From Macrostomum lignano (Eukaryota), in NCBI GenBank assembly GCA_002269645.1, contig NIVC01002230.1, forward strand, positions 89,285 through 153,284: 64,000 nt of DNA. The letters are read 5' to 3'. Each line of letters starts with the position of its first letter. Position 1 is the stretch's first letter. This document shows, piece by piece, positions 2,805 to 63,115 of this stretch. A program made the position numbers and the translations under genes. The notes beneath the pieces were generated by a model that saw nothing but the letters and a program-made list of their open reading frames with translations, made no database searches and had not been told where the DNA came from.

Positions 2805-5755
<2,951 letters not shown>

Positions 5756-6506: not shown

Positions 6507-7036
6507 CCACGAGGCGCACTCATTGAGAGCTTGGGCGAGGCAGAGCCAAACTAGCAGTTAGGCACACAGAAGGCTGAGACAGTTAAGACAATAGACGAAA
6601 GCAAGTACTGTACACGTATACATGTACTACGAGCTACAATAGAGGCCAACAAGTGGATCAATGCAGCAAACGAAGAATTACATATGTACATGTAAGAAAG
6701 ATTGTACATGTAAGTTCGCCCAGCTCCCCTCCCCATGGATAGCCAGGTAAATTCAACTATAATTTAACTTACGTACATATACTACTGTACGTACATATAC
6801 ATAACCTTTATGTAACGGCAGCTAGCTATTTGTTATGTGTATACATGTACCTGTGTAAGATGGTTTGCTTAGTTGATTGCGTGTGCGCACGTTCACTAGC
6901 TCTTATGTACATTTGCTCGCTGTACAATGATAATATATAAGTGAATGCCTTGGCGCCCTGGGCAGCCAAGAGTCGGTCTACGCCTTAAGCCAATTTCTCA
7001 TTTTCGCTTGTTCTTACATTGGTGGCAGCGGCGGCT

Positions 7037-17393: not shown

Positions 17394-20300
17394 ACAGCTC
17401 GACGGCCGGAAACACCAGCAGCCTGCTCCTCATCCCGGATGTGCAGACGAGCCGACGAGCTCGCCGAGGTCAGCATTTTCCCTGTCGCCGGTTTTGACGC
17501 CCGCCTGCACTCGCCAGGCCCGCCGTTTTTCGCAGCCAACGGCAGCCTCATCCGAACCTTCGGCACCCGCCAGCTCACGTTGGACCTCGGCATCCGGCGC
17601 TGCTCCTGGCCGTTCCTTCTGGCCGAGGTCTCCCGCCCGCTGATCGGCGCCGACTTTCTGCGGCACCACGGCCTGCTGGTGGACCTGCCGCACCGGCGCC
17701 TCTTGGACGCCCGCTCGCTCTCCAGCGTGCACCTGCTGGACGGCGCGGGGCCCGGACTGCAACTCGCCGCAGCCGCCGCTGCGGACCCGTACAGCCAGCT
17801 GTTGGCCGAGTTCCCCGCCCTCACCGAGCCCAGTTTCCAGCGGGCTGAGCCACGACACGGGGTGGAGCACCACGTCCCGACGCAGGGCCCGCCGGTCCAT
17901 GCCCGCCCTCGCCGCCTGCCGCCGGACAAGCTGGCGGTGGCCAAGGAGGAGTTCCGGCTCCTGGAGCAACTCGGCATCGTTCGCCGGTCCAACAGCCCTT
18001 GGTCCTCGCCGTTGCATATGGTCCCAAAAGCCTCCGGTGGCTGGCGGCCCTGAGGCGATTTCAGGCGGCTAAACGACGCCACGGTGCCCGACCGCTACCC
18101 GGTGCCGCACATCCAGGACTTCTCAGTGCGCCTAGCCGGCTGCTCGGTTTTCTCCAAGATCGACCTGGTTCGTGGCTACCACCAGGTGCCCGTGGCCGCA
18201 GCCGACGTGCCCAAGACCGCCGTCACCACCCCGTTCGGCCTCTTCGAGTTCCTGCGAATGCCATTCGGTCTCAAGAACGCCGCCCAGGCCTTCCAGCTGT
18301 GGCCGCCAGTCGGCGGTTGGTGGACTCCGTCTGCCAAGACCTGGACTTTGTCTTCGCCTACATCGACGACTTCCTGGTCGCTAGCCGCAGCCCGCAGCAG
18401 CACCTGAAGCACCTGCGGACGCTTTTCCAGCGCCTGATCGACAACGGCCTTATCGTCAACCCGGCCAAGTGCGAGTTCGGCCGCAGCGAGATCGACTTCC
18501 TCGGCCACCGGAACAGCGCCCAGGGAGCCGTGCCGCTGCCCGCCAAAGTCGACGCCATCGCCAGATTCGCACCGCCAGCCACCGTCAAGGGCCTGCAGGA
18601 GTTCGCCGGCATGGTGAATTTCTACCACCGCTTCGTGCCGCGCGCCGCCCAGCTGCTGCGCCCCATCCATGCGGCCATGGCCGGCAAGGAGAAGTTCGTC
18701 CGGTGGACGCCCGAGCTGACCGCCGCTTTCGATGGAGCGAAGCGGGCGCTGGCCTCCGCCGCCATGCTGGCGCACCCGCGGCCAGACGCGCCCATCGCCC
18801 TCACCGTCGACGCCTCCGATACCGCGGTCGGGGCAGCGCTCGAGCAGCGGGTTGGCAGCGCCTGGCAGCCGCTCGCCTTCTTCAGCCGGCAGCTGCGCCC
18901 GCCCGAGCAGAAGTACAGCGCGTTCGACCGCGAGCTGCTCGCGCTGTACCTGGCGGTGCGGCACTTCCGCTATTTCCTGGAGGGCCGCGCGTTCACCGCT
19001 TTCACGGACCACAAGCCGCTGGTCGCCGCCATGTCCAAGATGTCGGACCCGTGGTCCGCCCGACAGCAGCGCCACCTGGCCTACGTGTCCGAGTTCACCA
19101 CGGACATCCAGCACGTGCGGGCAAGGACAACTCGGTCGCAGACGCGCTGTCCCGCTGCACGGTCTCTTCCGTGCAGCCCCGGCTGCTCCATGGCGTGGAT
19201 TTCGCGTCCATGGCCCATGGTCAGGCGGACGCCAGCCTCCAACTTGAGCCGCTGCAGCTCAGCCCCGGTGTCGCCCTGCTCTGCGACATCTCCACAGGCC
19301 GGCCGCGCCCGTTGGTGCCGCCGAATTTCAGACGCCCCGTCTTCGACACCATCCACGGCCTCGCCCACCCGTCCGTCCGCAGCACGCGGCGCCTCGTGGC
19401 CGCCAAGTTCGTGTGGGCCGGCATGAACAAGGACGTTAGCCGGTGGGCCCGGTCCTGTGTCGCTTGCCAGACGGCCAAGGTGCACCGGCACGTCACCGCC
19501 CCGGTTGGCAATATCCGCGTCCCGGACCAGCGCTTCGCCCACGTGCACATCGACCTGGTGGGGCCGCTTCCGCCTTCGCAAGGTTTCACGCACTTGCTGA
19601 CAATCTTGGACCGTTTCACCCGGTGGCCGGAGGCGATCCCGATGACCGACACCTCCGCGGCCGCGTGCGCCTCCGCCTTCATCGCCCACTGGATCGCCAG
19701 GTTTGGAGTGCCAAGCGACATCACCTCGGACCGCGGCTCGCAGTTCACGTCGCTGCTGTGGTCCAACGTCTCATGGCTCCTCGGAATGCAGCTCCACCGG
19801 ACAACGGCTTTCCATCCGCAGGCGAACAGGCTGGTCGAGCGTTTCCACCGGCAGCTGAAGTCCTCCCTCATGACGCGACTGGCCGGACCAGCCTGGGTTA
19901 GCGAGCTACCCTGGGTGCTGCTCGGCATCCGGACGGCCCCCAAGGAGGACCTGCCGGCATCGTCGGCCGAGCTGGTCTACGGAGCGCCCCTCTGCGTGCC
20001 TGGCGAGTGCCTGCAGCCCAGCCCGCCGGCCGGCGACTACGAACAGTTCCTCGCCCGGCTCCGCGGCGCCGTCCAGGCATTCCGGCCGACGCCGACGTCC
20101 CGTCACGGCAGCCGCCCCACAGCTTGGCTGGCCGCCCTCGACGCCTGCCAGCTCGTTTTCGTCCGGCGCGACGGCCACCGCCCTCCGCTGCAGCGACCTT
20201 ATGACGGCCCGTTCAAGATCCTCGAGCGGGACGCCAAAGCTTCCTGCTGGACCTGGGCACTCGACGCGACCGAGTGTCAGTGGAGAGACTGAAGCCAGCC

Positions 20301-24167: not shown

Positions 24168-27100
24168 ATGTCTGCTGCCAAGTCGGAGGCGCAGGCAACC
24201 AGTGGTGATTCACCTGCACCTGTGGTGATCTGTGGCGCTGGCATCATCGGGTGCTCGGTGGCCTACTACCTGGCCAAGCGGGGAGTGCGCAGCATCCTGC
24301 TGGAGCGAGTATCCATTGCTAGCGCCGCCTCTGGCAAGGCTGGCGGCTTCCTCGCCCTGGACTGGTGCAGTGGAGCGCTGAACAGCCTGGCCCGGGAGAG
24401 CTTCCGGTTGCATGAGGAACTGGCCAGCGAGCTGGGGGCCGATGTCATTGACTACCGGTGCGCTGGTGGGGCTGTGGTGCATTGCCATGGAAACTGCAGT
24501 GTGGATGGGTGCGGGGATAGAATGAATTGCTAATCTAGCCTATGATGGATATAGGAATAAAATGGATTGCTAATCTAGCCTATAATGGATATAGGAATAA
24601 AATGGATTGCTAATCTAGCCTATGATAGATGCAGGAATAGAATGGATTGCTAATCTAGCCTATCACGGATGCAGGAATAGAATGGATTGCTAATCTAGCC
24701 TATCATGGATGCAGGAATAGAAGGGATTGCTAATCTAGCCTATCATGGGTGCAGTAATAGAATGGATTGCTAATCTAGCCTATCATGGATGCAGGAATAG
24801 AATGGATTGCTAATCTAGCCTATAATGGATGCAGGAATAGAATGGATTGCTAATCTAGCCAACATCTATGAAGGAATAGAATGGATTGCTAATTTAGCCT
24901 ATCATGGGTGCAGGAATAGAATGGATTGCTAATCTAGCCAACATCAATGAAAGAATAGAATGGATTTCTAATCTAGTTAACATCAAAGAATTCCGCGTTA
25001 CCCACCTGTGCAGCCGTCTCGACACACTTTCCGTCGTGTTCGGCAACTCCAGCCAATCGCACAGCGGCGCTTCCGACCTGCCCGACTGGGTGACCGGCCG
25101 GGTGACCGAGTGCGGCCTGCTGGGCAGTCAGAGCAGCACCGCGCAGGTGCACCCGGGCAAGCTGACAGCCGCCCTGGCACGCAAAGCTGCCGAGCTGGTT
25201 GGCTCGGAGGTAAGAGAAGAACCAGCTTCATTTCGGGATAAGGTTGTGGCGCCATTCTTTTGTTAAATTGTGGCGCCATTCGCTTATTAAATTATGGCGC
25301 TCTTCTTTTATTAAATTGTGGTGCCATTATTTCATTAAATCGTGGTGCGATTCCTTCATTAGATTGTGGCGCTCTACTTTTATTAAATTGTGGCGCCATT
25401 CTTGTATTAAATTGTGGCTCCATTCATTTATTAAATTGTGGCGCCATTCTTGTATTAAATTGTGGCGCCATTCTTGTATTAAATTGTGGCGCCATTGGCT
25501 TATTAAATTGTGGCGCCATTCTCACATTAAATTGTTGCGCCATTCTTTCATTAAATTGTGGCGCTATTCTTTCAGGTTCGCATTGCCACGGTGACGGGCC
25601 TGCAGTGGTCCTCGGAGCCGGACCCGGCCACCGGCCAGTTCCGCGTCAGTCACGTGCTCGTGTCCGGCGGCCAGCCGCCCATCGCCTGCTCGGCCGTGGT
25701 GCTGGCCATGGGCCCGTGGACGGACGCCGGGCTCGCGTGGCTCAGCCAGCCAACCGGGCAGGTGCGCGGCCACCGGGCCCACTCGCTGGTGGTGCAGCCG
25801 GCAGAGCCGGTCTCGCCGCACGCCCTGTTCACCCAGATGGACGCCGGCCGGGCGTCGCCGGAGTTCTATCCGAGGCCGGACGGCACCGTCTACGTCTGCG
25901 GCTTGGGCGACGACCCGCCGCTGCCCGACTCCTCCGATTTGGTGCGTGTGTGGCGCCAGTTGCAGTTTAATCAGGAATTATTAGAATGATTAGATTGAAA
26001 TTCTTCAACGTTAAACTTCTACTTAAAGTAGATATTCTGAATATTGACAGTTTTTCAAAGTTTTTTGCTAACTAATTTTAACTGGCTGTAGTTTAAGTTT
26101 TAAGGCTCTTAACGACAACTGTCTGTGACCTGGAACTCACCTGAATTTTAACTATCAGACGCCTGAAATATAGCTATCATAAACACCTGACGCCTAGCTG
26201 TCAGACACCTGACGCCTAGCTGTTAAAAACACCTGACGCCTAGCTGTCAAAGACACCTGACACCTAGCTGTCAAAGACACCTGACGCCTAGCTGTCAAAG
26301 ACACCTGACACCTAGCTGTCAAAGACACCTGACGCCTAGCTGTCAGACACCTGACGCCTAGCTGTTAAAAACACCTGACGCCTAGCTGTCAAAGACACCT
26401 GACACCTAGCTGTCAAAGACACCTGACACCTAGCTGTCAAAGACACCTGACACCTAGCTGTCAAAGACACCTGACGCCTAGCTGTCAAAGACACCTGACG
26501 CCTAGCTGTCAAAGACACCTGACGCCTAGCTGTCAAAGACACCTGACACCTAGCTGTCAAAGACACCTGACACGTAGCTGTCAGACACCTGACAACTAGC
26601 TATCAAAGACACCTGACACGTAGCTGTCAAAGACACCTGACAACTAGCTGTCAAAGACACCTGAGACCTAGCTGTCAAAGACACCTGACAACTAGCTGTC
26701 AAAGACACCTGACACCTAGCTATCAAAGACACCTGACAACGAGCTGTCAAAGACACCTGACACGTAGCTGTCAAAGACACCTGAGACCTAGCTGCCAAAG
26801 ACACCTGAGACCTAGCTGTCAAAGACACCTGACACGTAGCTGTCAAAGACACCTGACACCTAGCTGTCAAAGACACCTGACAACTAGCTGTCAAAGACAC
26901 CTGACACCTAGCTGTCAAAGACACCTTACACCTAGCTGTCAAAGACACCTGACAACTAGCTGTCAAAGACACCTGACACCTAGCTGTCAAAGACACCTTA
27001 CACCTAGCTGTCAAAGACACCTGACAACTAGCTGTCAAAGACACCTGACACCTAGCTGTCAAAGACACCTGACACCTAGCTGTCAAAGACACCTGAGACG

Positions 27101-44233: not shown

Positions 44234-45385
44234 ATGACGCGCTACGCCAGGGGCGGCCAGGCCAACAAGAAAAAGCCAAACGAGGCCAGCAGCTGGGCTC
44301 AGATGAAAGCCGATTTGCTCACAGCCAAGTCCAAGTCTAAATCTTCTCCAGCTGCTGCAGGCGGACGGGTGATCACCCGATTGAAAAATGGTCACTACGT
44401 GGTCCGCATCGGCTCGTACGAGCGCGTACTCCGCTCCGAGGCCGAGCTGCGCCAGTGGAAACGGGCCGGGTCTGAGCGGCGCCGGCAGCAGCGGAAACGG
44501 CACCGGGAGGCGGACAGAGTCTGCTTTCACTGCCGGCAGCCGGGCCACCTGGTCAGCGACTGTCCCGAAGTGAGCGGCGCCGCCAGTGCCAGCGGCGCGG
44601 CTGCGTAAGTGCCAAGGCTGGACTGTCTATGGCAGGCACTGATCCCTGCGGTTTCTGCGTATCTCAGGCCCGAACATTCACAAGAGTTGCCTTTGAATTT
44701 CCCGTTTGCATTAAATACCCAAGGCATTAGAATCCACTATTAGTATCCAAGCCATTAGATTCCCCTATTAGTACCCAAGGCATTAGAATCCCCTATTAGT
44801 ATCCAAGCCATTGGAATTGCCTATTAGTATCCAAGCCATTAGATTCCCCTATTAGTATCCAAGCCATTAGAATCCCCTATTAGTATCCAAGCCATTAGAA
44901 TCACTGCAGACCAACAGAAAGCAACTCTGACCGCCGTTCTCTTTAGCATTTGCTTTCGCTGCGGCTCCAGCGAACACGCGCTCTCTGCCTGTCCGAAGAT
45001 GCCCCGGCCGGGCAGCAGTTCGGACACGTCGGCCGGCCAGCAGCAGCAGCCGGACCTGCCGTTCGCGAGCTGCTTCGTGTGCGGCCGCAGCGGCCACCTG
45101 TCCCGGTCGTGCCCCGACAATCCTCGCGGCCTCTACCCCAAGGGCGGCGGCTGCCTGCTGTGCTCCAGCGTCGAGCACTTCAAGCGCGACTGCCCGCTGA
45201 TGCAGCGCCGTCGAGCGGCGGAGGTGTCGGCCGCCGAAGTCGCCCTGCCGTTGTCGTCCGGTGGAGGCGGCGCCGATGACGAGGTTCCTCTGTTGCCATC
45301 GATTCTGGAGACCCGCCCGGATGGCGACGGGGCTGCAAATCAGCCGAAGGCCAAGAAGAAGAAGGTCAAGGTTGTCGTGCTCTAG
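44234..45385 (+). CDS. ZCCHC9: Zinc knuckle protein ZCCHC9-like (4 CCHC), 2 exons
   Basis: Exons 44234-44604 and 44947-45385 (phase 2). N-terminal MTRYAR...ASSWAQMK; knuckles CFHCRQPGHLVSDC, CFRCGSSEHALSAC, CFVCGRSGHLSRSCPDNPRGLYPKGGGC and CLLCSSVEHFKRDC; ends KVVVL. Confidence 0.9.
44715..44900. repeat. Intronic minisatellite, 28-bp unit (CCATTAGATTCCCCTATTAGTATCCAAG)
   Basis: Array in the ZCCHC9 intron. Confidence 0.9.
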
Positions 45386-46230: not shown

Positions 46231-46923
46231 ATGAGCAGAGGCGGCGGACGGGGCGGCGGGCGCGGAGGGCGCGGCGGCGGCAGCTTCATAGTCCAGTCCT
46301 ACAAAAACCTGATGCGCTCTGATGGCCACATGCCGCTTGGCGGAGTCAGAGTTGGCGACGACGAGCAGACGCTGTACCCGCCGTTGCCAAGGCGACCGGC
46401 GCCGCCGACAGTGGTCAAGGACCTGAAGTTCATGGTGGCGGCTATGCGAGACCTGGAGGACCGCTTCAGCGCCGGCGCCAGTCTGCCCGCGGTGCCGAAC
46501 TCGGCGAACTTTCCGGCCGAGCTCGACTGGCTCCGCCGAAAGCGTCGGCGTCAACAGCAGCAGCAGCAGTCATCGGCGACAACCGTGGCCAAGAATGCCG
46601 CCGCTGCCGGAGCCAAGCGGCGCCGTCAGGATGTCGTAGAGGCGGCGGCTTCAGCGCTGCTCGATGAAGTCGTTGGCGGCCAGTTGGAGACGTCGGCTGA
46701 GGCGGCGAAGGAGGCGGCAACGTCGGCAACGATTGTCGCTGGCGGCGGCGAAGGAGGCGACGGCGAGGAGCGGGACGACGATGAAAACGAGGAGGCTGGG
46801 GTCTTCGAGAACGATGAGGAGCTGGAGGACAATGACTACGTGGATGCCTACTTTGACAACGGCGAGGGCTACGGGCCTGACGACGGCGAGGAGGACCTGG
46901 ATGGGGAGTCCTGGTACTACTGA
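46231..46923 (+). CDS. RPC7: RNA polymerase III subunit RPC7 (Rpc31/POLR3G family)
   Basis: RGG-rich N-terminus, LYPPLPRRP, FPAEL, and acidic tail DEELEDNDYVDAYFDNGEGY ending in Tyr. Confidence 0.88.
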   Translation: MSRGGGRGGGRGGRGGGSFIVQSYKNLMRSDGHMPLGGVRVGDDEQTLYPPLPRRPAPPTVVKDLKFMVAAMRDLEDRFSAGASLPAVPNSANFPAELDWLRRKRRRQQQQQQSSATTVAKNAAAAGAKRRRQDVVEAAASALLDEVVGGQLETSAEAAKEAATSATIVAGGGEGGDGEERDDDENEEAGVFENDEELEDNDYVDAYFDNGEGYGPDDGEEDLDGESWYY

Positions 46924-48006
46924 CCGGTGTTACCTGGTACTACTGACCGGTGTTACCTGGTACTACTGACCGGTGTTACCTGGTACTACTGACCGGTGTT
47001 ACCTGGTACTACTGACCGGTGTTACCTGGTACTACTGACCGGTGTTACCTGGTACTACTGACCGGTGTTACCTGGTACTACTGACCGGTGCTACCTGGTA
47101 CTACTGACCGGTGCTACCTGGTACTACTGACCGGTGCTACCTGGTACTACTGACCGGTGTTACCTGGTACTACTGACCGGTGCTACCTGGTACTACTGAC
47201 CGGTGTTACCTGGTACTACTGACCGGTGCTACCTGGTACTACTGACCGGTGTTACCTGGTACTACTGACCGGTGCTACCTGGTACTACTGACCGGTGTTA
47301 CCTGGTACTACTGACCGGTGCTACCTGGTACTACTGACCGGTGTTACCTGGTACTACTGACCGGTGTTACCTGGTACTACTGACCGGTGTTACCTGGTAC
47401 TACTGACCGGTGCTACCTGGTACTACTGACCGGTGTTACCTGGTACTACTGACCGGTGCTACCTGGTACTACTGACCGGTGCTACCTGGTACTGCTGACC
47501 GGTGTTACCTGGTACTACTGACCGGTGCTACCTGGTACTACTGACCGGTGTTACCTGGTACTACTGACCGGTGTTACCTGGTACTACTGACCGGTGCTAC
47601 CTGGTACTACTGACCGGTGTTACCTGGTACTACTGACCGGTGCTACCTGGTACTACTGACCGGTGTTACCTGGTACTACTGACCGGTGTTACCTGGTACT
47701 ACTGACCGGTGTTACCTGGTACTACTGACCGGTGCTACCTGGTACTACTGACCGGTGCTACCTGGTACTACTGACCGGTGTTACCTGGTACTACTGACCG
47801 GTGTTACCTGGTACTACTGACCGGTGCTACCTGGTACTACTGACCGGTGTTACCTGGTACTACTGACCGGTGCTACCTGGTACTACTGACCGGTGTTACC
47901 TGGTACTACTGACCGGTGCTACCTGGTACTACTGACCGGTGTTACCTGGTACTACTGACCGGTGTTACCTGGTACTACTGACCGGTGCTACCTGGTACTG
48001 CTGACC
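46910..48006. repeat. Minisatellite, 23-bp unit (CCTGGTACTACTGACCGGTGYTA), about 47 copies, overlapping the RPC7 stop codon
   Basis: Highly homogeneous array whose first unit is the end of the RPC7 CDS. Confidence 0.97.
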
Positions 48007-48848: not shown

Positions 48849-51800
48849 TCACTTAGTCATAAGTACAGCGGCAGAACCCAGCACTGCCTCATCCCCCCCC
48901 CCTTCGAAACGGATAGGGGGCACGCCTCGAGTTGACCGAGCTGGGTAGCGGAGTGCTGCTGTTTGACTTGGGCCTTGTTCGGATTCGGTGGGCGGGTCCC
49001 GACTGAGTTCGCCGAGCGGGTCCTGACCGAGTTCGCCAGGCGGGTCCTCACCGAGGCCGCAGGGCGGATCCTGACCGAGTTCGATAGGTAGGCTCTGGCC
49101 TAATCGGTTTGGCTGGACCTGGTCTTCTACAACGCGGCTCAGCTGATCCGCATGCGCCAGGGCGATGCGACCGCCTTGACGAGCGATTAGGGCAGTGTTG
49201 GTCCCTTTCTGCACGACGAACTCAGCTCGCTCCTGACGCTGCTGATCTCCAGGCGTGTACCACAGGCTCGCTCCAATTGGTGTGCGCATGGTTATCGGGT
49301 TGCGTAGTTGTCGGCCCATGAGCTGCGACGGGCTCTGCTGGCGCCCAGCATGCGGAACACACCTGCAGTTTAGCAGTACCCTGGACAGGAACGACTCGTA
49401 GCTTTCGGACATGTCCCACGCCGCAGATGCTCTCTTGATAGACTGGACCATCCGCTCGGCCAAGCCGTTAGACTCAGGGTGTCGCGGGGGAGTCTTGATG
49501 GCGCGGCAGCCGATAATTCTTTCCAGCCAGGCGATCAGATTGGCGTCGTGGAACTCGGCGGCGTTGTCGCTGACCAGCACATGAGGCACGCCGTTCCTAG
49601 CAAAGACCGCCTGCAACACCCGCTTGACTGCCGCCGCGTCCCTGTTTTGCACTCGTACGGCCTCGGGCCAGCCGGACATAGCGTCAACTAGAATGAGCAG
49701 GAGTCCGACCCTCGGCACGCACGCATGATCCATGTGGACTCTGTGCCACGGCTTTTCCTCGTCGGGCCACCTGTGGACACTCTCCAGACCACTCGGGCGC
49801 AGTCTTGAGCAGGTCGAGCAACCTCGAACGTAGGCCCCCAAGCAACAGGTACGCGCGTATTACGCGCATATTTGGAGCGTAATGTCATACACAGCGCGTA
49901 AAACACGCGTATTACGCGCGTTATTATACGCTAGTATATTTAGTGCGTTTTAGACGCGATACTTTGCTCAAAGCAAATAAAAAATGGTTAATTATTCAAA
50001 TATCCAGTAAAGCTAACAGCGTGCACCATGCGTGTGAACAACGCATGTGTAACGCGTTCGCATGCTTTTATTTAGTATGTTAGTATTTTATTTAATTCTT
50101 TGTTTCCTATCGTTACAGTAGAACCATTCTTTTCAATAGTTATAGCATACTCAGTATGTGTTTCGTGTTAACATTAGTTGGACTTAAGCCAACTGCATGT
50201 AATCTGGAGCATGCAACACTTGTTTTATGGATTACTTTGCTTTATATGACTTATATCATAGTTAATTATAGCTAGATAGCGATATATTAAAATATAGCTA
50301 TTTGATACATTTTATCATGCATTAATTTGGCTTCTTTTATTACTTTGAAATATATTACATGTATATATTGGATTTTTATGTTTCAAACTTAAATGGCCTC
50401 AAAGGCTTTTAAAAAAGATTGCTTTATTGTTGTTTCCTTTTTAAATTTATATTCACTTATTTAACTAGAGTTGCATGTAGTTGCTTTTTGTTTGAAAATA
50501 ATTGTTAATCCAAATCATTTTACTTTTCACTTTCACTTTTCACTTTCACTTTTTTCTTTTTAACTCGGTCAGAATTGTGTGTATATTTTCGTGTGCTTTA
50601 GCGGTTTTTTCTTTTATGCTAATAACCACTACTCACTACTCATCACTACTCGTTAATTTAAGTTGCTCTTTCATTACACTCTTATGTATCTATTTGTTCT
50701 TAAATTATTTTTTAAAAATAAAAATTTGCAGTTCATTTATCAGAACTCCGTTTTCGGCAACGTCCCTACGGGCTGGCATTTTGATGCACATAAACTGACC
50801 AATATTTGTATTGATTTTTCCTATACTTTATTTACTAAAAGCCACTTCAGCCTTGGATTGGCTCAGCTAACGTTCCTTCTGGGTTATTCGATGTAATTAA
50901 AGCCTTATGACAATTAAGTACGCTTGCATGAATATACGAATCCGCGGAACCTATATATACATGTATGATTAGTCCTGTTCCTGTACCAGTCTGCAGTTAG
51001 CATTGCGTTATTACAGCGTATTTTCTGTGTTACAAAAGGCGCGCATTTTGTGTGTTCGCTTACGCGCGTAAAACGCGAACGAAAATGCGCGTTTTATGCG
51101 CGTAATACGCGCGTACCTGTTGCTTGGGCCTCGACGTCGTTGCAATAGCCAGGCCACCAGGCTGAGTTCTGTAGGCGAGCGTTGAGCCAGATCCCTGATG
51201 CGTGTCGTGCACGATTCCAAGAACGCTTTGTCGGAGGACAGCCGGGATGACTGGGCGATCACCGTAGCAGAGAACTCCGCCGTCGGTCGTGAGGGCGTGT
51301 CGGATGGCCTTGAAAGGTCGTTCAGCTGGCGAGCAGTTTGACCATCTGTTGATAGCAACGCATTTAATAATATCAACCAGCAACCGGTCCCTTTGGGTCT
51401 CTGATTTCAGCTCCTGCCACGGAATCACAGCCTCGCCAGTCCAGTGAATGATGCTTTCCGGCCGCTCTGTCAGCTCGTTGCTGCTGTCACCTTCGAAATC
51501 CAGCCGTGAAAGTGCATCTACTTGCGGAATCGATTCGCCTTTAGTGTAGATTATGTCATGGTCAAAGGCCATCAGTTTGATTGCCCATCGGAGAAGTCTC
51601 GCATTGGCAACCTTCGGCAACTGGCGCCTCGACCCGAAGATGAATTCCAGCGGGCGATGATCCGTTCTGAGTGTGAAGCGCGACCCTAATAGGAACTGTT
51701 TCGCACGCTCCATAGCCCAGACGATCGCCAGCGCCTCTCTCTCGATGTTTGAATACCGTGCTTCTGCACTGCTCAGTCTCCGGCTGAAGTACATGATCGG

Positions 51801-53170
51801 GTGGTTTCCCTGCGAGAGGATCGCTCCGATGGCTTTCTCGCTAGCATCGGTAGTGAGCGTGGTCTCTTTGTGCTTGTCATACGGCTTGATTACAGGCTCG
51901 CTGCAGAGCAGATCCTTGATTCGCGTGAAGGCAGCTTCCTGGGTTGGGCCCCAGACGAACTCAACGTTTCGGCCCCGGAGTTGATTGAGCGGTTCTATGA
52001 CGTCAGAGTAGTTCTTAATAAACCTCCCGAAGAAGTTGGAAAGTCCTAGAAACGATTAGAGCTGCTTTCTGTCCTTCGGCGAGTTCACGGAGCGAATTTT
52101 TCCGACCAGATTGGGGTCCGGGGTGATCCCGCTCGCGCTGATGCTGTAGCCGAGGAATCTGACCTCCGTTGCCATTCCAGCAGCTCGCATCGTCTGGAGA
52201 ACGTGCTGCACTTTGCTCCTTAATTCGGCGTTGGATTTCGCTCCCAGGAGGACGTCATCCTGGTAGACAATCTTGTTGCTGACATCCTGTAGGATTGTTT
52301 CCAAGGCTTTCTGGAAAATGGCCGATGCAGATTTCAGCCCGGGAACCAGCCTTTTGTAGCGGAAGAGACCCAAAGGTGTCGCGATTGTCGTCACCTCTCG
52401 GCTATCTTCATCGAGCTCGATTTGCAGATAAGCATCAGAGAGATCCAGTTTAGCAAAGTGCGACATGCCTGCTATCTCAGAAAAAATCGTCTCCATCTCC
52501 GGGATCGGGTAGGTGTCATTGCATATCTGGTGATTGACACCAGCTTTAAAATCGGCACAGACACGAACCTTTCCATTTGGTTTGAGCACGTTGACAATAG
52601 GCGATGCCCACTGGCTGCCTCCGGGAGGGACCGCCTCAATGATACCCTCGGATTCCATTCTCTGCAGCTCGCGCACCACCAAGTCTCTGAGGTGTAGCGG
52701 CACAGATCGGGCAGCACAATAGAACGCTTTGGCTCCTTCCACCAGTCTAATCTTAGCTTTGAACCCTTTGAGGCACCCGAGCTGCTGGACCGCGTTGATG
52801 GTGACCGCGTCTTCTTGGAGCTTGATGTTGTCCATGCCAAGCATGCTTCTTCCATGCTTCTGCTCCGCGGCGGTGACAACCAAGTCAATCGTGACGAATT
52901 TCGAGTTGGTCTCGAGTGACGCATTGAATTCCCCGAGGCAGGCGATGCTGGAGCCGTCGAACTGCCAGAGAATTCTCCTTCACTTGCGCAGGGTGGGCTG
53001 GCCCAGCTGGCGCCAGAGGTTCTGCGGAATCAAGCTGACCTCAGCTCCGGTGTCGACTTGCATTGAGATGCCCTGGCCGTTGATTTTGATGGTCTTGAAA
53101 AGGCCCACTTTAGCTCTGTTGGGACTGAGAGTATACACGTCTGCTTCTTCTGCATCGAGTGCGATTTCCT
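48849..53170 (-). pseudogene. pol: Pol of the Mag-like element (PR, RT, RH, IN), frameshifted and interrupted
   Basis: ORF pieces 52980..53570, 52056..52883, 51060..51794 and 48849..49841 carry successive pol motifs. Confidence 0.88.
49837..51128. mobile_element. Non-autonomous DNA transposon with CCC termini and a 2-bp TSD (EnSpm/CMC-like)
   Basis: TIR CCCAAGCAACAGGTACGCGCGTATTACGCGCATA; CC duplicated; AT-rich core. Excision restores integrase ...CNDVEAYVRGCSTC. Confidence 0.88.
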
Positions 53171-53375
53171 GATGGACAGCTCGCGATCTGCAGACAGCCG
53201 CAAAGTGATTTCTTTTTTGGCACTTGAAGCATTTTTTGCCGTAGGCTGGGCAGTTGCCTCTCGGGTGATTGGCACCACAGAACCCGCATTTGATTGACGG
53301 CTGCGGCTTGGCAGGTGAGGAGACTCCCCTCTGTTGACCGGCGAAGGCGATGTCAGCAGGAGCCGGCGTGTTGTA

Positions 53376-53975
53376 GGGGTCCATGAGATTTGCCCGCCGA
53401 GAATTGCCCGCCGAGATTTGCCCGCAGTGCAATTTGCCCGCGAGTGAATTGCCCGCGAGCGAGTTGCCCGCCGAGTTTTTTCCCGCCGAGGTTTGCCCGC
53501 AATGATTCAATGATTTTTTCCAGCAGCGCATTTGGCGACGCGGCAGATTTTGTCTGCATTGCCTTCCCATGCTTAGTACGTGTTAATCTCAATAAAGAGA
53601 TTTACACGATCAAAACGTTTTGATAGTAACTGCATATCAAATGCATATTTTGGGGGTAGCAATGTATAGACAGAATCTAGCTGCCAAATGCGCTGCAAAA
53701 AAGGATCGCGGGCAAACCTCGGCGGGAAAAAACTCGGCGGGCAATTCGCTCGCGGGCAATTCACTCGCGGGAAAATTGCATTGCGGGCAAACCTCGGCGG
53801 GCAATTCTCGGCGGGCAAATCTCCACGGGCAATTCGCTCACGGGCAAAATGCACTGCGGGCAAATCTCCGCGGAAAAGCTCGGCGGGCAAATCTCCACGG
53901 GCAAATCTCCACGGGCAAATCTCCTGCGGGCAAATCTCGGCGGGCAATTCGTCTGCGGGCATTTCTCGTGCTCCC
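53376..53975. mobile_element. Foldback-type non-autonomous DNA transposon inserted in gag
   Basis: 8-bp TSD GTGTTGTA (53368-53375 and 53976-53983); GGG termini; inverted arms of GCGGGCAAAT subrepeats. Excision restores gag ...IRDYNTPAPADIAF. Confidence 0.9.
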
Positions 53976-54443
53976 GTGTTGTAGTCACGGATCTGCTCAA
54001 GCTGCTGCAAATTCTGCAAAATCCTGTCGAGTGGCGTTTCTCCATCTTCGTTTTGTAGGCGCTCCAAGTTTCTTTTTTTGTGCTCTGAGGAGTTGAGGCC
54101 GTCAATTAATCGCATGGTAATCATGTCGTCCTCCTTTGTCTGCTTGCTGCCCAGCTTTTCAAACTCGCAGTGTGACGTAGCAGCCCTCAGCCTCCGGTAG
54201 TAGGCTATGACGGTCTCACCCGATTCCTGCTTCAGGCTGAGGAATCTGGTGCGTTCGGCAATTACAAGTGATTTTTTCGGCCGGATCGTCTCGTCAACGA
54301 GCTTTTTGATGTCATCGAATTTCATCTCATCAAGTTTTTTTGGTGCTGCCATTAGAGATAGCGTGCGAATTGCCTGAAGGCCGGCCTTAGATAAGAATAG
54401 GTCAGTTTTGTCCCGAGCCTCATCCGAGTCTGTTAGCTTTTTG

Positions 54444-56049: not shown

Positions 56050-58299
56050 ATGCAGAAGCCGCAGAAGTACGACTGGAAAGACTCCAACCTTGCTCTGTTC
56101 GGCAGCAAGACCGAGAAGGATGTGAAAAGTGAGGTCATTAATGAATCATGCTGTTGTAGGTTAAGCTACCTCATTGTAGCCAGAAGCGTTCAAGTAGGCC
56201 AAGTTGAAGAGTCACTGGTCACTGGTAGATTCTTATAGAAACTTCAGCTGTGGGGATGTTTACTTCAATATAGTGGATTCAAGAAATCCGTTTCGGTCAT
56301 CACTAGCGTGTCTTGAGTCTTAATCGTAGATCAACCTTGGACAAAGCACGTACTTGTTGCTTCCTTTAAACTTCGAAAGTCCACAAGGTCGGAAGTTGAC
56401 CAAGTCAGACAAAAACTGACTTGGAATAATTTTGCCCGCAGAGGCCGCGTCCGAGGTCGAGACGGCCTGGCAGCCGGTGAAGGAGTGCACCAGCGACGAG
56501 CTCTTCGTGTGGCGCATCGAGAAGTTCAAAGTAAAGGCCTGGCCCAAGGAGGATTACGGCAAGTTCTTCAGCGGCGACTCCTACATCGTGCTCAATGTGT
56601 ACAAGGACCCCGACGGTGATGAGCTGCTCTACGATGTGCACTTCTGGATTGGAAAGCACAGCACTCAGGTGCGGGAGCTTTTGAGCACTAGATGTAGCAC
56701 TAGCAGTTAGCGTTTCATTAAGCTTAAATCTTGAATGTCCTCAATCAGGACGAGTACGGCACGGCCGCCTACAAGACCGTGGAGCTGGACACCTTCCTGG
56801 ACGACAAGGCCGTACAGCATCGCGAGGTTCAGGAGCACGAGTCCTCGATGTTCAAGTCCTACTTCAAGACCATCACGTAAGCGAGTGGGCTAGATTAGCA
56901 ATCCATTCTATGCCCTACATCCATGTCAGGCTAGATTCTCAGTTTACTGTAGTCTTTCTTCCATTTTTGCTAGATTAAAAATCCACTTTCCCAACCTCTC
57001 GCTGCGCCGAAAGTTATCTCAAGGGCGGCTGCGCCACCGGCTTTCGGCAGGTGAAGCCTGAGGAGTACAAGCCCCGACTGCTGCACTTCTGCGGAGTCCG
57101 GCGCAACATCGAGGTCAAGGAGGTCAAGCTGACCAGGAAAGCTCTCAACTCCAATGACGTTTCATCCTGGACCTCGGCCGCACCGCCTACCAGTGGAACG
57201 GCAAAACCTGCAACAAGGACGAGCGCATCAAGGCCGCCGCTTTCCTGCAGCAGCTGGAGAATGAGCGCCACGGCAAGACGCAGACTTTCACCCTGGATGA
57301 GAACAGCATCGGCTCCGAGCACAAGTTCTACCAGAGCCTGCCGGACGTGCCCTACGCCAAGAAATCCTCGGAGGTGAAAAGCGATGTGCGCAGCGGCAAG
57401 AAGGCCATGTTCAGGTGCGCATCTGTTGGCTGATGCTGGCCTGTCTTGCACCCACCCCATCCTCCGCACGGGCTTCAGTCCCGCACCCACCTTATCCTCC
57501 GCACGGGCTTCAGTCCCGCACCCACCCCATCCTCCGCACATGTTTCAGTCCCGCACCCACCTTATCCTCCGCACAGGTTTCAGTCCAGCACCCACCCCAT
57601 CCTCCGCACAGGTTTCAGTCCCGCACCACCCCATCCTCCGCACATGTTTCAGTCCCGCACCCACCCCATCCTCCGCACGGGCTTCAGTCCCGCGCTCTCA
57701 CCCATTCTCTCTCTATCTCACTCATCTCACCGTCTCATCTTACCATAGGCTGTCGGACGAGTCGGGCAAGCTGCAGTACTCGCTGGTCTCTGAAGGCAAC
57801 TGCCCCAGGTCCATGATCAATGAGGATGTAAGCGTAACTTTAGTTCTCAGCTACTTTATGAGTAGTATTGGTTGCAGATCATCACATACTTGACCGTTCG
57901 CACGTCCAGGATGTGTACATCATCGACACCGGCGTGGAAATTTTCGTATACGTCGGCGCCAGGGCCTCGGACGCTGAGAAGATGAACGCGCTGCAGTATG
58001 CTCATGTGAGTGATTGCTCGAGTTTGAGATAACTTTATTAAGTTAGTTTGTGCGGTGGGGGGGGCTGTGCCTTTGGAGTTCAAATTCAGAGAGTTATAGT
58101 ATGCATTACCCGCTGAGCTAATCTGCACCCCAGCGTTTAAGATAGTCTCTCACAAGACCCCACGATGAGGCTCTCTACTAGACAGCTGGTCCATTTCGAA
58201 CCGCAGGACTACCTGAAGACCACGCAGCATCCGCTGATTCCGGTGACGGCCTGCCGCGGCAACATGAAGAACCCACAGATGGAGAAGGTCCTGGACTGA
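56050..58299 (+). CDS. Three-domain gelsolin-like (severin/fragmin-type) actin-severing protein, 7 exons
   Basis: Exons 56050-56128, 56442-56668, 56749-56876, 57014-57414, 57749-57827, 57910-58005 and 58207-58299. Motifs [64 protein letters not shown]. One T is missing at 57160-57162 (DVF-ILD). Confidence 0.93.
57450..57695. repeat. Intronic ~35-bp repeats (CCGCACCCACCCCATCCTCCGCACGGGCTTCAGTC)
   Basis: Array in gelsolin intron 4. Confidence 0.88.
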
Positions 58300-59673
58300 T
58301 CGCTAACGAATCCTACTAATAGTAATAACAAGAACAAGACTGCTCGCTTCCTATGCGAACCCAGCAGCGCTAATCCGGGCCCGGTAGCTGATCAGCTGCC
58401 TGCATGTGGGCACCGTCTGTTCAGTACTTATGCCATTTAATCTGCTGAATAACTTCTGATTAGTTGAACATTTAGCCCTATACATGTAATTTATTATAAT
58501 GATCAGCTGACCGCAGCTCTCACTAAACTTTTTAGTCGGTTTTCAATACTCTGCAATCAGTTTTATTTATTTAAAGCAATTTCAAGCAATTTTAAGCTGG
58601 CTTATCAGCTTTTAATTAATAATCTTATTAATAATGGAAACATTAATAAACACGCGGTGCCAGTCAACTACCGCATAAAATACCACAGCTAACGGATTTT
58701 ATATTTCTCACCTGCTGTGTTTCATTGGAAATTGATTTACAATCTTGCCAATTTAAACAAAAAAAAACAGTTGTAATGGGAAAAAATGCAGGCTTTTTAA
58801 AGTTACGACCCAGGAATAGCGGTTTGTCACGGAATGATTTTGTCCGATTTTTTCGAAAAGGAATTCGAAAATTGTTATTGTTGAAGAGCGGCAATCCATT
58901 TTAGCTCGTAACATCCATCTGGAAGTCTGAAGAAGCCTGTCTCATTTCCAATATTCAATGATGAGGCATTTCAACCTTAGTTTGTTCCCAAGGGTCCAAG
59001 CCACATCCCAATGTCTGCTTCCAGCCTTCTTCCCCGAACAAAGAACTGCGTTTAATTCGAGACTGCACTTATTGGAATTCTTCAAACACGAATTACCTGG
59101 TCAGTGTGACTCGATCTCCAACGGTGTGCGTGTGCCCAGCTAGAAGCCCCTGGATATCTGTTCATGCCGTCATGCTTCAGTCTTCCCCAAATTGATCGGG
59201 AAGACGTAAATTTTTTTTGATTATAAGCGCAGACTTTCGTTAAGTCACTCCAAACGGAATGCCGATGGCGCCAAACTGGATTCATCTCTGATCGAAGGGC
59301 TCCGTCTAGTAAACAAATACTCTCTCTATTATCTTCAAAATTTCATTTCTGTCAAAGCCTCGCTAAAAACTAGCTTATTTTGCACCAGCTAGCATTGAAA
59401 ATTACGCAATAGAGTTGAATGACGAAAACTGTTTGCACTCGATGGCATTGACCATTTTTAGCTAAGAACAGCAAAGTTTATGTTTAACTTTTGTCAAAAA
59501 TATTTCATTACCACGCTAATTGTTACTGCGTCAAATATTGTGACGCCAATAAACAGCAGGTGATAAAATATTTCTCCTTGGCATTTAAATACTATAAAAA
59601 GCAGCTAGCTCTCCGCAACGAATCGCCACTCTACACTCTCAGAAAATCTCCAACCGCATTCTCCAACTCTGCA

Positions 59674-60777
59674 ATGGTACTCAGACAGCCCGCAATGCTA
59701 AGCTCTTTGCTGGCCGCCATCGCCTGCTGCATCATTTGTGCTTCAGTCGACTGCGAGAAAGTCAGCAGTGCGAATAGAATAATAATCAGGTACCCACCAT
59801 CTAGATGGATCCGGTACGGAGGCAACGCCAAGAGCATGTCGAGAAGGATCAGGATCGGAGGCAACGCCAAGAGCATGTCTAGAAGGATCAGGATCGGAGG
59901 CAACGCCAAGAGCATGTCTAGAAGGATCAGGATCGCAGGCAACGCCAAGAGCTTGTCGAGACGGATCAGGATCGGAGGCAACGCCAAGAGCATGTCGAGA
60001 AGGATCAGGATCGGAGGCAACGCCAAGAGCATGTCGAGACGGATCAGGATCGGAGGCAACGCCAAGAGCTTGTCGAGACGGATCAGGATCGGAGGCAACG
60101 CCAAGAGCATTTCTAGAATGATCAGGATCGGAGGCAATGCCAAGAGCATGTCGAGACGGATCAGGATCGAAGGCAACGCCAAGAGCATGTCGAGAAGGAT
60201 CAGGATCGGAGGCAACGCCAAGAGCATGTCGAGACGGATCAGGATCGGAGGCAACGCCAAGAGCTTGTCGAGACGGATCAGGATCGGAGGCAACGCCAAG
60301 AGCATGTCGAGAAGGATCAGGATCGGAGGCAACGCCAAGAGCTTGTCGAGAAGGATCAGGATCGGAGGCAACGCCAAGAGCATGTCGAGAAGGATCAGGA
60401 TCGGAGGCAACGCCAAGAGCATGTCGAGAAGGATCAGGATCGGAGGCAACGCCAAGAGCATGTCGAGACGGATCAGGATCGGAGGCAACGCCAAGAGCTT
60501 GTCGAGAAGGATCAGGATCGGAGGCAACGCCAAGAGCATGTCGAGAAGGATCAGGATCGGAGGCAACGCCAAGAGCATGTCGAGAAGGATCAGGATCGGA
60601 GGCAACGCCAAGAGCATGTCTAGAAGGATCAGGATCGAAGGCAACGTCATGAGCATGTCGAGAAGGATCAGGATCGGAGGCAACGCCAAGAGCATGTCGA
60701 GACGGATCAGGATCGGAGGCAACGCTAAGAGCATGTCTAGACGGATCAGGATCGGAGGCAACGCCAAGAGCATCTAA
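59674..60777 (+). CDS. Putative secreted cationic tandem-repeat protein (signal peptide + about 25 x IRIGGNAKSMSRR), 367 aa
   Basis: Hydrophobic N-terminus MLSSLLAAIACCIICASVDC; 39-bp units without indels; recurrent variants are silent (TCG/TCT, AGG/CGG) or conservative (Met/Leu). Confidence 0.7.
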   Translation: MVLRQPAMLSSLLAAIACCIICASVDCEKVSSANRIIIRYPPSRWIRYGGNAKSMSRRIRIGGNAKSMSRRIRIGGNAKSMSRRIRIAGNAKSLSRRIRIGGNAKSMSRRIRIGGNAKSMSRRIRIGGNAKSLSRRIRIGGNAKSISRMIRIGGNAKSMSRRIRIEGNAKSMSRRIRIGGNAKSMSRRIRIGGNAKSLSRRIRIGGNAKSMSRRIRIGGNAKSLSRRIRIGGNAKSMSRRIRIGGNAKSMSRRIRIGGNAKSMSRRIRIGGNAKSLSRRIRIGGNAKSMSRRIRIGGNAKSMSRRIRIGGNAKSMSRRIRIEGNVMSMSRRIRIGGNAKSMSRRIRIGGNAKSMSRRIRIGGNAKSI

Positions 60778-63115
60778 GCTTGCAGCAATTCGTGAATTCC
60801 AGAAATCCCACAATATTTGCCAATTGCGTCTGTTTTTACTCGGGCTTTTTTTTGAATCCCCATTTCGGTTTCGGTTTTATTTATTTCAATAGATGTCCTA
60901 ATATTTGATCTGTAGAAGATGCTACAGTTAATGTTACTGCTGTTCAATTCTTAGTTCCATTTTTTCAAGTAGCCATCGTGTCTTGATTCAGCAGATAAAA
61001 TTTAGTCTATTTGTTTTAGGTACAAGTTAACAATCGCTCTGCAAAATCATAAAGTTTTCAGGATTAAAGTCAGAGTTGGCCAACTCTCTTTCAGCTAAAT
61101 TTAATCCAAATTAATTCTGCTCTTTCACAGCGTAAGGTGTTTTATTAGGCCAGGACGAAGAGTGGTTGGCTAGAATAAAGACAATGTCAGCTATGATCTT
61201 CTATATGTCTCTCGCAACTCGCGATAGCCAAGAACCAGTTCTTTGTGTTTTTTAACTTCTTCAGCTGGCGTTAACAATTGAGTAGGAATTCAGCCTCGTA
61301 GAGACTTAGTTAATGAAGAGTTAAAGCAGTGCGAATGTGTGAATCGCTCGCATATACTGAAAGAGACAGCTTTTTAAATTATTTCATTACTTGTGTGTTT
61401 GAACTCTCAATCAACGAATTCAGCTGTTCGGGATACATATTTGACCTTGAGCTTCGATAAATGACTGCCAGGGAGACCGAAAACAATCCAATTATTAATC
61501 GCCTAGGCATTCGGCTACTTCTGTCAGGCGCAAGCATTCAGTTGGACTGTAATGAAGTGATGTACTTTCGGCCCTAAAGTTTCTATTCAGCTTTGAATGT
61601 ATTAATAACTGATGGATATGCTCAAACTAGCAAAAGCTGTAGAGTATTGGCTGTAATTTACTATGACAGCATCCTTTAATGCGAAAGACTGAGAAAATGA
61701 CATACAAACCCTTATCAAACCAAGTGTTGTGCAATCGTGCCCTTTCTCGCCCTCCTGCCCCGCCCCAACCCTCCAGTCTGCCCCACCCCTCCAATCAATA
61801 ATCAACGCGTACGCCGATCACGCCACCCCGCCCCACCTCCCCTGCTGTACCGTACATTTGTTCTTAAGTTATATTCATGTACGCGTAGGACCAATGAAAA
61901 ATATAGTCGCTGTCTGGAGGGCAGACTCCTCCCTTGCGCGCGTTGGTCCGCCTCCGTTGGCTATTGACTAAACGACTCGTCGATCTACCATAAAAAGTGC
62001 ACGGCGAACTGCATCGGCTACGGTGTGTAAGTTCGTGTTCGCGAGTTACTGTCCTTTTTCTGCTTCTCCCTAGGGCGCGGGACGGGAGCTCTGACTGGGG
62101 ACGTGGGGGTCGCAGCTTCCCGACAGGTTAAAGCTGTAGGCGTTGCTCCGGAGGACGGGGGCTCACAACACAAGCAAGAAGCTGCGCCTTTCTTCGCTTT
62201 CCTCCCTTTGCTCGCTCGCCCTTGCTCACTCTTGTACTTGCATTAAATACGTAATCTCAGACCTGAGTAGACAATCTCCAACGACGACAGGTCGACAGGA
62301 AGTTTACAACGGAACTTCTTGGAGTCACCAGATTTTTTTCCTCATTGTTGAATCGTAACAAGCTTCTTACTTGGAGTGCCTTCTCTATATTACAGTTCCT
62401 TTTGTAAGGTAGAGAGACTATCTAGTCCTAGCATTAAGCTTACCCACAGCCACACCGACTTGTGCAGACTGGCTCGCAGCAAAAATTTTGTCCAAATCAA
62501 ATGTAAGACTGCAGAGTACTATTACTGCTGAGTATTAAAGACACTTGTCGGTGAGATCTTTACAAGCTACGAGCTATATAGCCTGCTTTAGAATATTGAT
62601 TTTGTGGCTATTTGTGGCTCGGCAGGAGCAGTCGCGATGCTTGGTGAGGTCAAAGAAGCTTCTCAGCTGGATAACCCACTTGGGAATCGCGTTGACTTGT
62701 CACTTCTTGGTTCCAGTTCATCGTTCTGTCGAAGGTCTCAACTTCAGACAGGATAAAAACGGCAGTTTTGTGCACCCCGTGTAGTCGCTGGGACTTTGAT
62801 CTCGTTTGATTTGAAGCAGAGCCAGCCTGTAAGTGTATGCATAGTGCCTAGTTTCGTTAGATTTTGACAGATCATTTGATTTAAGGGTGACCAATTGCCT
62901 TATCTACTGTCGTTTTAGTGTATAAATTGTGCGGAAGATCCGTTACGTTGAGCCCTCTATCGAGTTTTTTGTCTGTTTGTGTGAAAAAAGTTTCAACCAC
63001 TATCAGCTGCAGAAGACTTGAATACACACTGCCTTTTGTATTGAATACGGGAAATACGTGCACACTACATAGGTGCAGTGCTTACGAGCGTATTTCCTCT
63101 GCCAGGTACACGCAG

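Follow-up and report, generated by a model that had tools for sequence, protein, structure and literature searches.

In a 64,000-nucleotide stretch of contig NIVC01002230.1 of the flatworm Macrostomum lignano (hereafter the window, with all positions counted from its first letter), the + strand carries a 367-codon open reading frame (ORF; ATG 59674-59676, TAA 60775-60777) which, judging from its sequence, probably represents a genuine gene, restricted to its lineage, that encodes a secreted repeat protein of very basic character. The ORF comprises three parts, namely a 27-residue hydrophobic N-terminus (MVLRQPAMLSSLLAAIACCIICASVDC), an 18-residue unique stretch (EKVSSANRIIIRYPPSRW) and an array of 39-bp units of the consensus ATCAGGATCGGAGGCAACGCCAAGAGCATGTCGAGAAGG, which encodes IRIGGNAKSMSRR. 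As to the nature of the product, we tentatively favour a lineage-restricted polycation, secreted by glands and left mostly uncleaved, that would bind to polyanions through multivalent electrostatic contacts. Lineage-restricted secreted repeat proteins are common in invertebrates, and such a repeat gene is thus no surprise in kind. The locus had been singled out by a model that read the letters of the window (hereafter the original prediction), and the analysis presented below followed up its claims.

Results

Organization of the ORF and of its repeat array

The Tandem Repeats Finder program (TRF) delimited the array at 59803-60773, with a period of 39, 24.9 copies, 94% matches and 0% indels. 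Every consensus unit encodes four basic residues (R2, K8, R12 and R13), which make up one RR pair and one RRIR motif (of the RxxR type), with no Gly before RR, and the stop codon coincides with the very end of the array. The coordinates, the unit, the copy number, the four basic residues and both motifs given by the original prediction were all correct, and the ORF and codon register agree with its description of an array that stays in frame behind a signal-peptide-like segment and ends at TAA. The same prediction had presented the absence of indels as a singularity of this array; the absence itself is real, but at least ten other arrays of the window also show 0% indels in TRF.

The recurrent variants of the unit are either synonymous (A37C, AGG/CGG, in nine units; G33T, TCG/TCT, in five) or conservative (A28T, Met to Leu, in five units), as had been noticed from the letters alone. 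That account had omitted the rare non-conservative variants, namely G to E (twice), G to A, A to V, K to M, M to I (twice), R to M and, in unit 1, I to Y.

The non-repeat N-terminus consists of 45 residues with an 18-residue hydrophobic core. Its ATG has a G at both -3 and +4, and the signal-like segment is ordered as R4, the 18-residue uncharged hydrophobic run and then the polar DCEK, the best 12-residue Kyte-Doolittle mean being 2.98. According to our own heuristic, the small residues at -3/-1 permit cleavage after S24 (S24/V25; slashes mark junctions) or C27 (C27/E28), and AlphaFold2 predicted a helix at residues 10-22 with a low pLDDT (predicted local distance difference test score). Among the arrays of the window, no other follows an in-frame ATG with a hydrophobic, non-repeat N-terminus. 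Furthermore, the TATAAAA heptamer at 59593 is the sole match to TATAAAA, TATAAA or TATA[AT]A[AT] on both strands of the 59000-61500 region; the window rate of TATAAAA (2.2e-4 per nt per strand) gives about 1.7% for an 80-nt target. Thus, the TATA heptamer, the short 5' untranslated region, the ATG context, the hydrophobic N-terminus, the in-frame array and the stop support the anatomy of a small stand-alone gene (Table 1).

To weigh this anatomy against chance, it is worth noting that, with a crude criterion, about 13 signal-peptide-like ATG starts were counted in approximately 96 kb of non-array sequence (both strands), some of which are genuine, such as that of the fibrinogen-domain ORF starting at 13495 (-). 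An in-frame signal-peptide-like ATG within 150 nt is expected at about 0.007 per array strand, and the joint chance of such a start and TATAAAA is roughly estimated at 0.002 for the whole window. This value is small yet not negligible for a genome with thousands of arrays, in which the best case was sought.

The third-position composition of the array matches that of host exons in frame 0, where the GC content at third codon positions (GC3) of the unit is 0.85, vs. 0.80 in host exons (755 codons from the window). Frame 0 also has the highest codon log-likelihood among the six frames of the unit, and the exact antisense frame has a GC3 of 0.23. The ORF forms a GC-richer island within flanks of 35-40% GC. 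When the 58000-62500 region was compared to the window with self-BLAST, no other copy was found; an origin from a transposon within the window was rejected on this ground.

A second locus with a conserved organization

The strongest evidence for function, which we regard as supportive, comes from the sequence comparison of two copies of the gene. A full HMMER scan of 1.84 billion representatives returned a sole real relative, P0093 (UniParc UPI0007A11E81; 1137 residues; E = 2.9e-216), which is alone in its 90% cluster; the protein sets searched in this study do not include the host's own proteins. P0093 was predicted automatically and combines at least three or four genes into one chimera, with several reading-frame switches inside the array, and it presents in the following order: an unassigned N-terminal piece, a gelsolin-like exon, KSPTAFSNSA-MVLGQPILSCLLAVLACYIITTTADCEEVSNANRVIIRYPPSRW, the array, an EF-hand protein and more. 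Its locus is syntenic to that of the window, where the region 57326-57412 matches a 29-residue segment of the gelsolin-like exon at 26 of the 29 residues (tblastn).

M1, unlike the second ATG (M8), is conserved in P0093. Ten of the first 25 positions differ between the two copies, with a one-codon indel among them, and the segment is still uncharged and hydrophobic; in simulations of random replacements with the same number of substitutions, 18% of the sequences stayed signal-peptide-like, a result that lends support without reaching significance by itself. Over the following 20 residues, from D26 (DCEKVSSANRIIIRYPPSRW), the two sequences differ at three positions and are identical at the 17 others, P0093 retaining DCE.VS.ANR.IIRYPPSRW. 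The P0093 array begins with a run of 23 IRIGGNAKSMSRR units, passes through stretches read in the two remaining frames and returns to frame for five further units, and all these 28 in-frame units are exactly the consensus, with no amino-acid change. The P0093 and window consensuses are identical in all three reading frames, and all 39 nucleotides of the consensus are therefore fixed as identical, an outcome with a probability of about 0.007 if the two loci are assumed to be 12% diverged. The out-of-frame stretches (RACRDG/RACREG/RACLEG) vary only at G33T and A37C, both synonymous in frame 0. The copy number differs between the two loci, with about 25 units in the window vs. about 38 in P0093. 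Exchange between arrays could be an alternative cause of the likeness of the units at the two loci, and the frame switches of P0093 may be assembly indels or real lesions. Independently of these points, the public record of P0093 is worth flagging as a mis-model that fuses the repeat gene to gelsolin-like and EF-hand genes.

Separation from the upstream gelsolin-like gene

A gelsolin-like gene lies upstream on the same strand. It starts at ATG 56050, continues through later exons at about 57898-58005 and 58210-58296, and stops at a TGA (58297-58299) located 1.4 kb before ATG 59674. Because this gene has its own third repeat, terminal exon and stop, the array ORF is separate from it. P0093 joins the gelsolin-like exon to the point equivalent to the AG at 59641-59642, and in the window the donor TTCAG/GT (57414/57415) and this AG would also join in frame. 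The AG could be a cis acceptor, a trans-splice acceptor or a mere choice of the predictor in P0093. That the array is an exon of a gelsolin/villin protein was rejected, in that the gelsolin-like gene of the window ends at its own stop and that P0093 is chimeric.

The original prediction had pointed to one event that would speak against it, the splicing out of the array at the candidate donor CAG/GTACCC (59789/59790). This donor has a C at both +4 and +5, whereas a G occurs at +5 in all five donors of the neighbouring gene, and the P0093 protein is colinear across the site; both facts disfavour the array as an intron. A splice from CAG/GTACCC to the ATCAG/G located inside a unit would only remove whole units in frame.

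Properties of the predicted product

The predicted mature product has about 340 residues, a mass of 37.6 kDa, a net charge of about +97 and a computed isoelectric point of about 12. It is rich in R (22%), I (16%), S (15%), G (14%) and K (7%), with 100 basic vs. three acidic residues.

That the family had not been recognized from the letters is borne out by the database searches, which together revealed no relative beyond P0093. No Pfam family scored above cut-off in the 367 residues, the best PDB matches (E >= 0.3) were rejected and left no sequence relative there, and the set of 5.8 billion proteins returned nothing with either the full protein or the two aligned N-termini. No match came from a metagenome scan with 1.7 repeat units, Rfam gave none in the window, exact look-ups of the ORF, a neighbouring ORF and P0093 returned no contigs, and no paper on the repeat peptide was found in the literature. 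The homology search with the N-terminus and the unit that the original prediction had called for thus yielded one relative and a set of periodic matches that we rejected. These are 171 weaker HMMER matches (E values from 1e-35 to 1e-3), whose scores accumulate because the repeat periods lock in phase; the 22 best of them, which were checked, have repeats of 13, 26, 39 or 52 residues, an unrelated composition and 8-46% identity. A Pfam match to the RFEGP repeat of PCF11 (31.8 bits for a cut-off of 43) was likewise rejected as a periodicity artefact. Four of the HMMER matches (P0101, P0115, P0117 and P0109) have 13-residue repeats with a similar core, RLGGDA... or RIG(N/S)GSE...; this shared 13-residue core, basic, aliphatic and with G-G-(N/D)-A, is probably a chance convergence among translated minisatellites. 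A scan for bacterial promoters and terminators was set aside, the locus being eukaryotic.

In single-sequence AlphaFold2 predictions, the protein is modelled as a regular beta-rich rod with two strands per 13-residue unit, at IRI and AKSM. The mean pLDDT reaches 74.6 at best, and the five models span 35-75. Foldseek returned insignificant beta-helix matches only (best E = 6.9e-3, TM-score <= 0.38; none at E <= 0.001). Solenoid models of perfect repeats tend to be over-confident, and we treat the beta-solenoid model as a hypothesis only, which is not used as evidence. The stacked Arg ladders of such a modelled solenoid would need counter-ions.

Table 1. Position of the features of the repeat-protein locus and of the upstream gene in the window.
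Feature	Position	Strand	Basis or remark
Gelsolin-like gene with three gelsolin repeats and its own terminal exons	56050-58299	+	Pfam Gelsolin E = 3.4e-39, three stretches
Candidate TATA box TATAAAA	59593-59599	+	81 nt 5' of the ATG
Initiator (Inr)-like motif CCACTCT	A at 59628	+	Motif reading
Pyrimidine-rich tract CTCTACACTCTCAG ending in AG, acceptor-like	59629-59642	+	Exon would begin at 59643
31-nt 5' leader	59643-59673	+	In-frame translation KSPTAFSNSA, 10/10 identical to P0093
Start codon and signal-peptide-like segment MVLRQPAMLSSLLAAIACCIICASVDC (27 residues)	59674-59754	+	Heuristic and comparison with the paralog
Short unique mature N-terminus EKVSSANRIIIRYPPSRW, partly degenerate unit	59755-59808	+	Last 39 nt match the unit consensus at 18/39
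24 full 39-bp units encoding IRIGGNAKSMSRR and variants	59809-60744	+	Without indels
Partial 25th unit IRIGGNAKSI, then TAA	60745-60777 (unit 60745-60774)	+	Sequence
ATTAAA, first candidate poly(A) signal	61063-61068	+	286 nt 3' of the stop
AATAAA, next candidate poly(A) signal	61174-61179	+	397 nt 3' of the stop

Neighbouring genes and other features of the window

The gene content of the window, with Fibrinogen_C, gelsolin, Rpc31 and zinc-knuckle genes as well as long terminal repeat (LTR) retrotransposons, is that of animal nuclear DNA. The animal origin of the window is supported by the ORF 12968-13495 (-), which encodes a hydrophobic N-terminus followed by a Fibrinogen_C domain (E = 1.1e-22) and corresponds to an exon of a secreted fibrinogen-related protein. 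In the gelsolin-like gene, the frame shifts by one base in a T run at 57155-57165 (+), which reads AATGACGTT/TCATCC where NDVFILD needs GTTTTC, and the exon pieces overlap by 1 nt at 57161; either the homopolymer was misassembled or this copy of the gene is truly frameshifted.

Many TRF arrays of the window sit in apparent introns. For instance, in a gene for an FAD-dependent oxidoreductase, which starts at 24168, arrays of 40-bp and 24-bp units at 24505-25572 lie between the ORF pieces. The best database matches of a conserved FAD-oxidoreductase exon were environmental fragments with an identity of only about 70%. Zinc-knuckle (zf-CCHC) ORFs and an ORF for an Rpc31-like subunit of RNA polymerase III occur at 44234-45385 (+) and 46231-46923 (+), the end of the Rpc31-like ORF running into a 23-bp array at 46910-48006. 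At 4173-4568 (-) and 3619-4083 (-), the beginning of one ORF resembles the C-terminal end of a forkhead domain, and ORFs rich in poly-Q and poly-A come after it; Pfam gave no match for these fragments.

Three regions have the gag/pol organization of LTR retrotransposons, with RVT_1, RNase H, integrase and aspartyl protease (7019-11720 (+), 16866-20292 (+) and 48849-54352 (-)). In the middle one (16866-20292), the GC content is 0.59-0.68 and pol is split over overlapping frames. Finally, a telomere-type (CCCTAA)n / CCTAACCCTAAAC tract occurs at 15851-16043, within 15441-16521, where it is flanked by mutually reverse-complement arrays (ATCACAAGCTCGAAAA vs. TTTTCGAGCTTGTGAT units; arms of up to 142 nt with 92% complementarity). 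This palindromic interstitial telomere-like structure (15441-16521) might reflect an old end-to-end fusion, a fold-back or a fault of the assembly.

Discussion

The original prediction had left a choice between a peptide precursor and an uncleaved cationic protein. We prefer the latter because the charge is extreme and unbalanced, and because the units have neither spacers nor a clean cleavage design, as well as because of the precedent of Mlig-ap1, which has positively charged Gly/Arg/Lys-rich repeats. We propose the following scheme. The region 59674-60777 would be the one coding exon of a small, independently transcribed gene. The N-terminal signal peptide would send the product into the secretory pathway, and the mature protein would be almost wholly (IRIGGNAKSMSRR)x24, with no acidic counter-segment. 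As a gland secretion, it would associate, by condensation or binding, with polyanions such as sulfated or acidic glycoconjugates, phosphoproteins, or microbial or substrate surfaces, and its role would be akin to that of the cationic constituents of the glues, mucus or coatings of invertebrates, or would lie in granule packing; an antimicrobial side activity is possible. In each unit, the alternating R-I-R-I segment would form a short amphipathic beta-strand. The array would have grown, and would be kept uniform, through unequal exchange of its 39-bp units, and selection on the peptide would remove the non-synonymous variants.

Several observations weigh against this proposal, and many of them would fit a non-coding minisatellite with a fortuitous ORF, the ATG, the hydrophobic stretch and the TATA heptamer of which would be coincidental and picked up by a reader scanning many arrays, a possibility that we hold to be somewhat unlikely. 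TRF arrays make up 24% of the 64-kb window. Of the ten whose period is a multiple of 3, six can be read from end to end in at least one frame without meeting a stop, so that openness means little; the present array is itself fully open in frame 0 as well as in two antisense frames, and its second + frame holds a 171-residue ORF. Five of the distinct unit variants are synonymous and ten non-synonymous, for a neutral expectation of 21% synonymous (binomial P = 0.20); this comparison among units, of the dN/dS type that the original prediction had suggested, reveals no significant purifying selection on the window's own units. The common synonymous variants A37C and G33T are also synonymous in the exact antisense frame and therefore do not choose the strand. 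The 45 codons of the N-terminus are not used as in the host (GC3 0.58; log-likelihood ratio of -0.38 per codon), and the amino-acid divergence of these 45 residues between the two loci (29%) is about that which translated neutral DNA would show at approximately 12% divergence. The closest canonical poly(A) signals are the two distant ones of Table 1, with none nearer to the stop. P0093, the one homologue found, is no proof of expression because it is a chimeric automatic model derived from DNA with frame shifts in the array, and neither the exact look-ups nor any database search returned a cDNA-derived product. Furthermore, the 18-residue hydrophobic run could, from its sequence, be a signal anchor instead of a cleaved signal, and an unneutralised +97 protein is an awkward cargo for the secretory pathway. 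What speaks against a mere minisatellite is the low joint chance of a signal-peptide-like ATG and TATAAAA, the stop placed exactly at the array end, the frame-0 GC3 that matches host exons and, in P0093, the conservation of the ATG and of the hydrophobicity in spite of an indel, which is in frame, together with the 39/39 identity of the consensus and a variation that is only synonymous in frame 0.

Alternatively, the protein might be a multi-copy precursor, in which a prohormone convertase cutting at RR, or a furin-like enzyme cutting at RRIR, followed by carboxypeptidase trimming, would release about 24 non-amidated IRIGGNAKSMS or IGGNAKSMS peptides; these would act as a neuropeptide-like signal or as a host-defence peptide, in a 'protein operon' like those of apidaecin and Baramicin. 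We consider this reading unlikely, although RR and RxxR occur at the identical place in every unit (all full units terminate in RR), the polymorphism of P0093 is synonymous only and leaves the strictly conserved peptide unchanged, the copy number differs by locus, and tandem identical peptides between basic cleavage sites have a precedent (PMC8423362). Indeed, there are no acidic spacers or charge-balancing pro-region (three acidic residues in 340), and the original prediction was right that the G-K/R amidation signal is absent, a Ser preceding RR. The canonical furin site R-X-K/R-R is also absent, the available sites being M-S-R-R/I, where the P4 residue of RR is Met, and R-R-I-R/I, both with Ile at P1'. 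According to the cleavage rules of insects and molluscs, Ile at P1' disfavours dibasic cleavage. In addition, unit 1 is preceded by SRW with no basic site (SRW/IRY), the last unit ends in ...KSI, and HMMER and Pfam revealed no similarity to a known neuropeptide or antimicrobial peptide family. It is highly improbable, in our opinion, that the array belongs to a larger or different product, be it an alternative 3' exon of the gelsolin-like gene, a type II membrane protein with an uncleaved anchor, or a minus-strand (MLLALPPILILLD)n protein. The in-frame junction between 57414/57415 and the AG at 59641-59642, the equivalent of which is used in P0093, would suit the first of these products; the 18-residue run, which is borderline between the hydrophobic region of a signal peptide and a transmembrane helix, would suit the second; and the minus frame -1, open over 380 codons with a GC3 of 0.85, would suit the third. 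However, the gelsolin-like gene is complete up to its own stop, P0093 is visibly chimeric with frame switches, and an internal hydrophobic segment followed by a +97 tail would make no sense on a cytosolic actin-severing protein. As for the minus-strand ORFs, they have no TATA-like motif or non-repeat start, and one of them has no ATG at all.

If expressed, the uncleaved polycation that we favour would be a protein built almost wholly by the expansion of a 39-bp minisatellite behind a signal peptide. It would be a useful case for how repeat-rich genomes generate new secreted proteins, about a quarter of the window being minisatellite. With its 37-kDa size, its charge of about +97 and its strict 13-residue unit, it would be of interest for the study of bioadhesives, coacervates and host-defence polycations. 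Because short-read transcriptomes cannot assemble arrays, such genes are systematically missed or mis-modelled, and the only public trace of this family is buried in the chimeric model P0093. A bolder view, which we regard as improbable, is that the repeat is a new structural module, a beta-solenoid with 13 residues per coil and continuous Arg and Lys ladders on its surface, which would fold only on a polyanion into a rigid cationic rod of about 12 nm (for glue, granule packing or antimicrobial action), or else that the gene encodes the densest spacer-less multi-copy precursor known, one holding the same non-amidated peptide 24 times. In both cases, the gene would be young and would consist almost wholly of an expanded minisatellite behind a signal peptide.

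Comparison with known systems

The protein is outside every family tested, and it resembles the cationic repeat proteins of invertebrate secretions and the tandem peptide precursors. Its modelled beta-rich rod recalls the narrow beta-solenoids, such as the insect antifreeze proteins with 12 residues per coil and the autotransporter passengers, with weak Foldseek matches to Ag43, TibA and a bacterial antifreeze protein. Unlike for established beta-solenoids, no Foldseek match was significant and the pLDDT values varied from 35 to 75 across the models.

In the sandcastle-worm proteins Pc-1 and Pc-2 and in mussel foot protein-1, short basic units are repeated behind a signal peptide and mediate electrostatic association or coacervation with polyanions; these proteins are rich in Lys, Gly and Tyr (converted to DOPA, 3,4-dihydroxyphenylalanine). 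The window protein similarly has many short basic units behind a candidate signal peptide. In contrast to these marine cement proteins, it is rich in Arg, Ile and Ser, shows no homology to them and has no Tyr in the repeat consensus; hence, no DOPA chemistry is expected.

Acidic spacers and Gly amidation signals are usual in neuropeptide precursors. In Baramicin A of Drosophila and in the bee apidaecin, peptide copies are arranged head-to-tail between basic sites as a 'protein operon', Baramicin having RXRR furin sites and three copies of a 23-mer plus other domains (PMC8423362). Similarly to these proteins and to the multi-copy neuropeptide precursors, the window protein presents a candidate signal peptide followed by copies of one short peptide bounded by basic residues. 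It differs from Baramicin by its 24 spacer-less copies, in which RR occurs after M-S and before Ile, with no Gly and only a minimal RxxR.

The nearest parallel in the same animal is Mlig-ap1, a giant flatworm adhesive protein with a core of protein- and carbohydrate-binding domains, and with repeat regions rich in Gly, Arg and Lys, which are positively charged, account for two-thirds of the protein and are thought to act by charge (PMC8621496). Like Mlig-ap1, the protein encoded in the window has a candidate signal peptide and predicted secretion, and it is made of highly positive, low-complexity repeats rich in G, R and K, a likeness that is compositional only. Unlike Mlig-ap1, it has 367 residues, no Pfam domain, a strict 13-residue unit that is also rich in Ile, Ser and Met, and no sequence homology found between the two. 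Such flatworm comparisons bear on how the protein would work, and not on its kinship.

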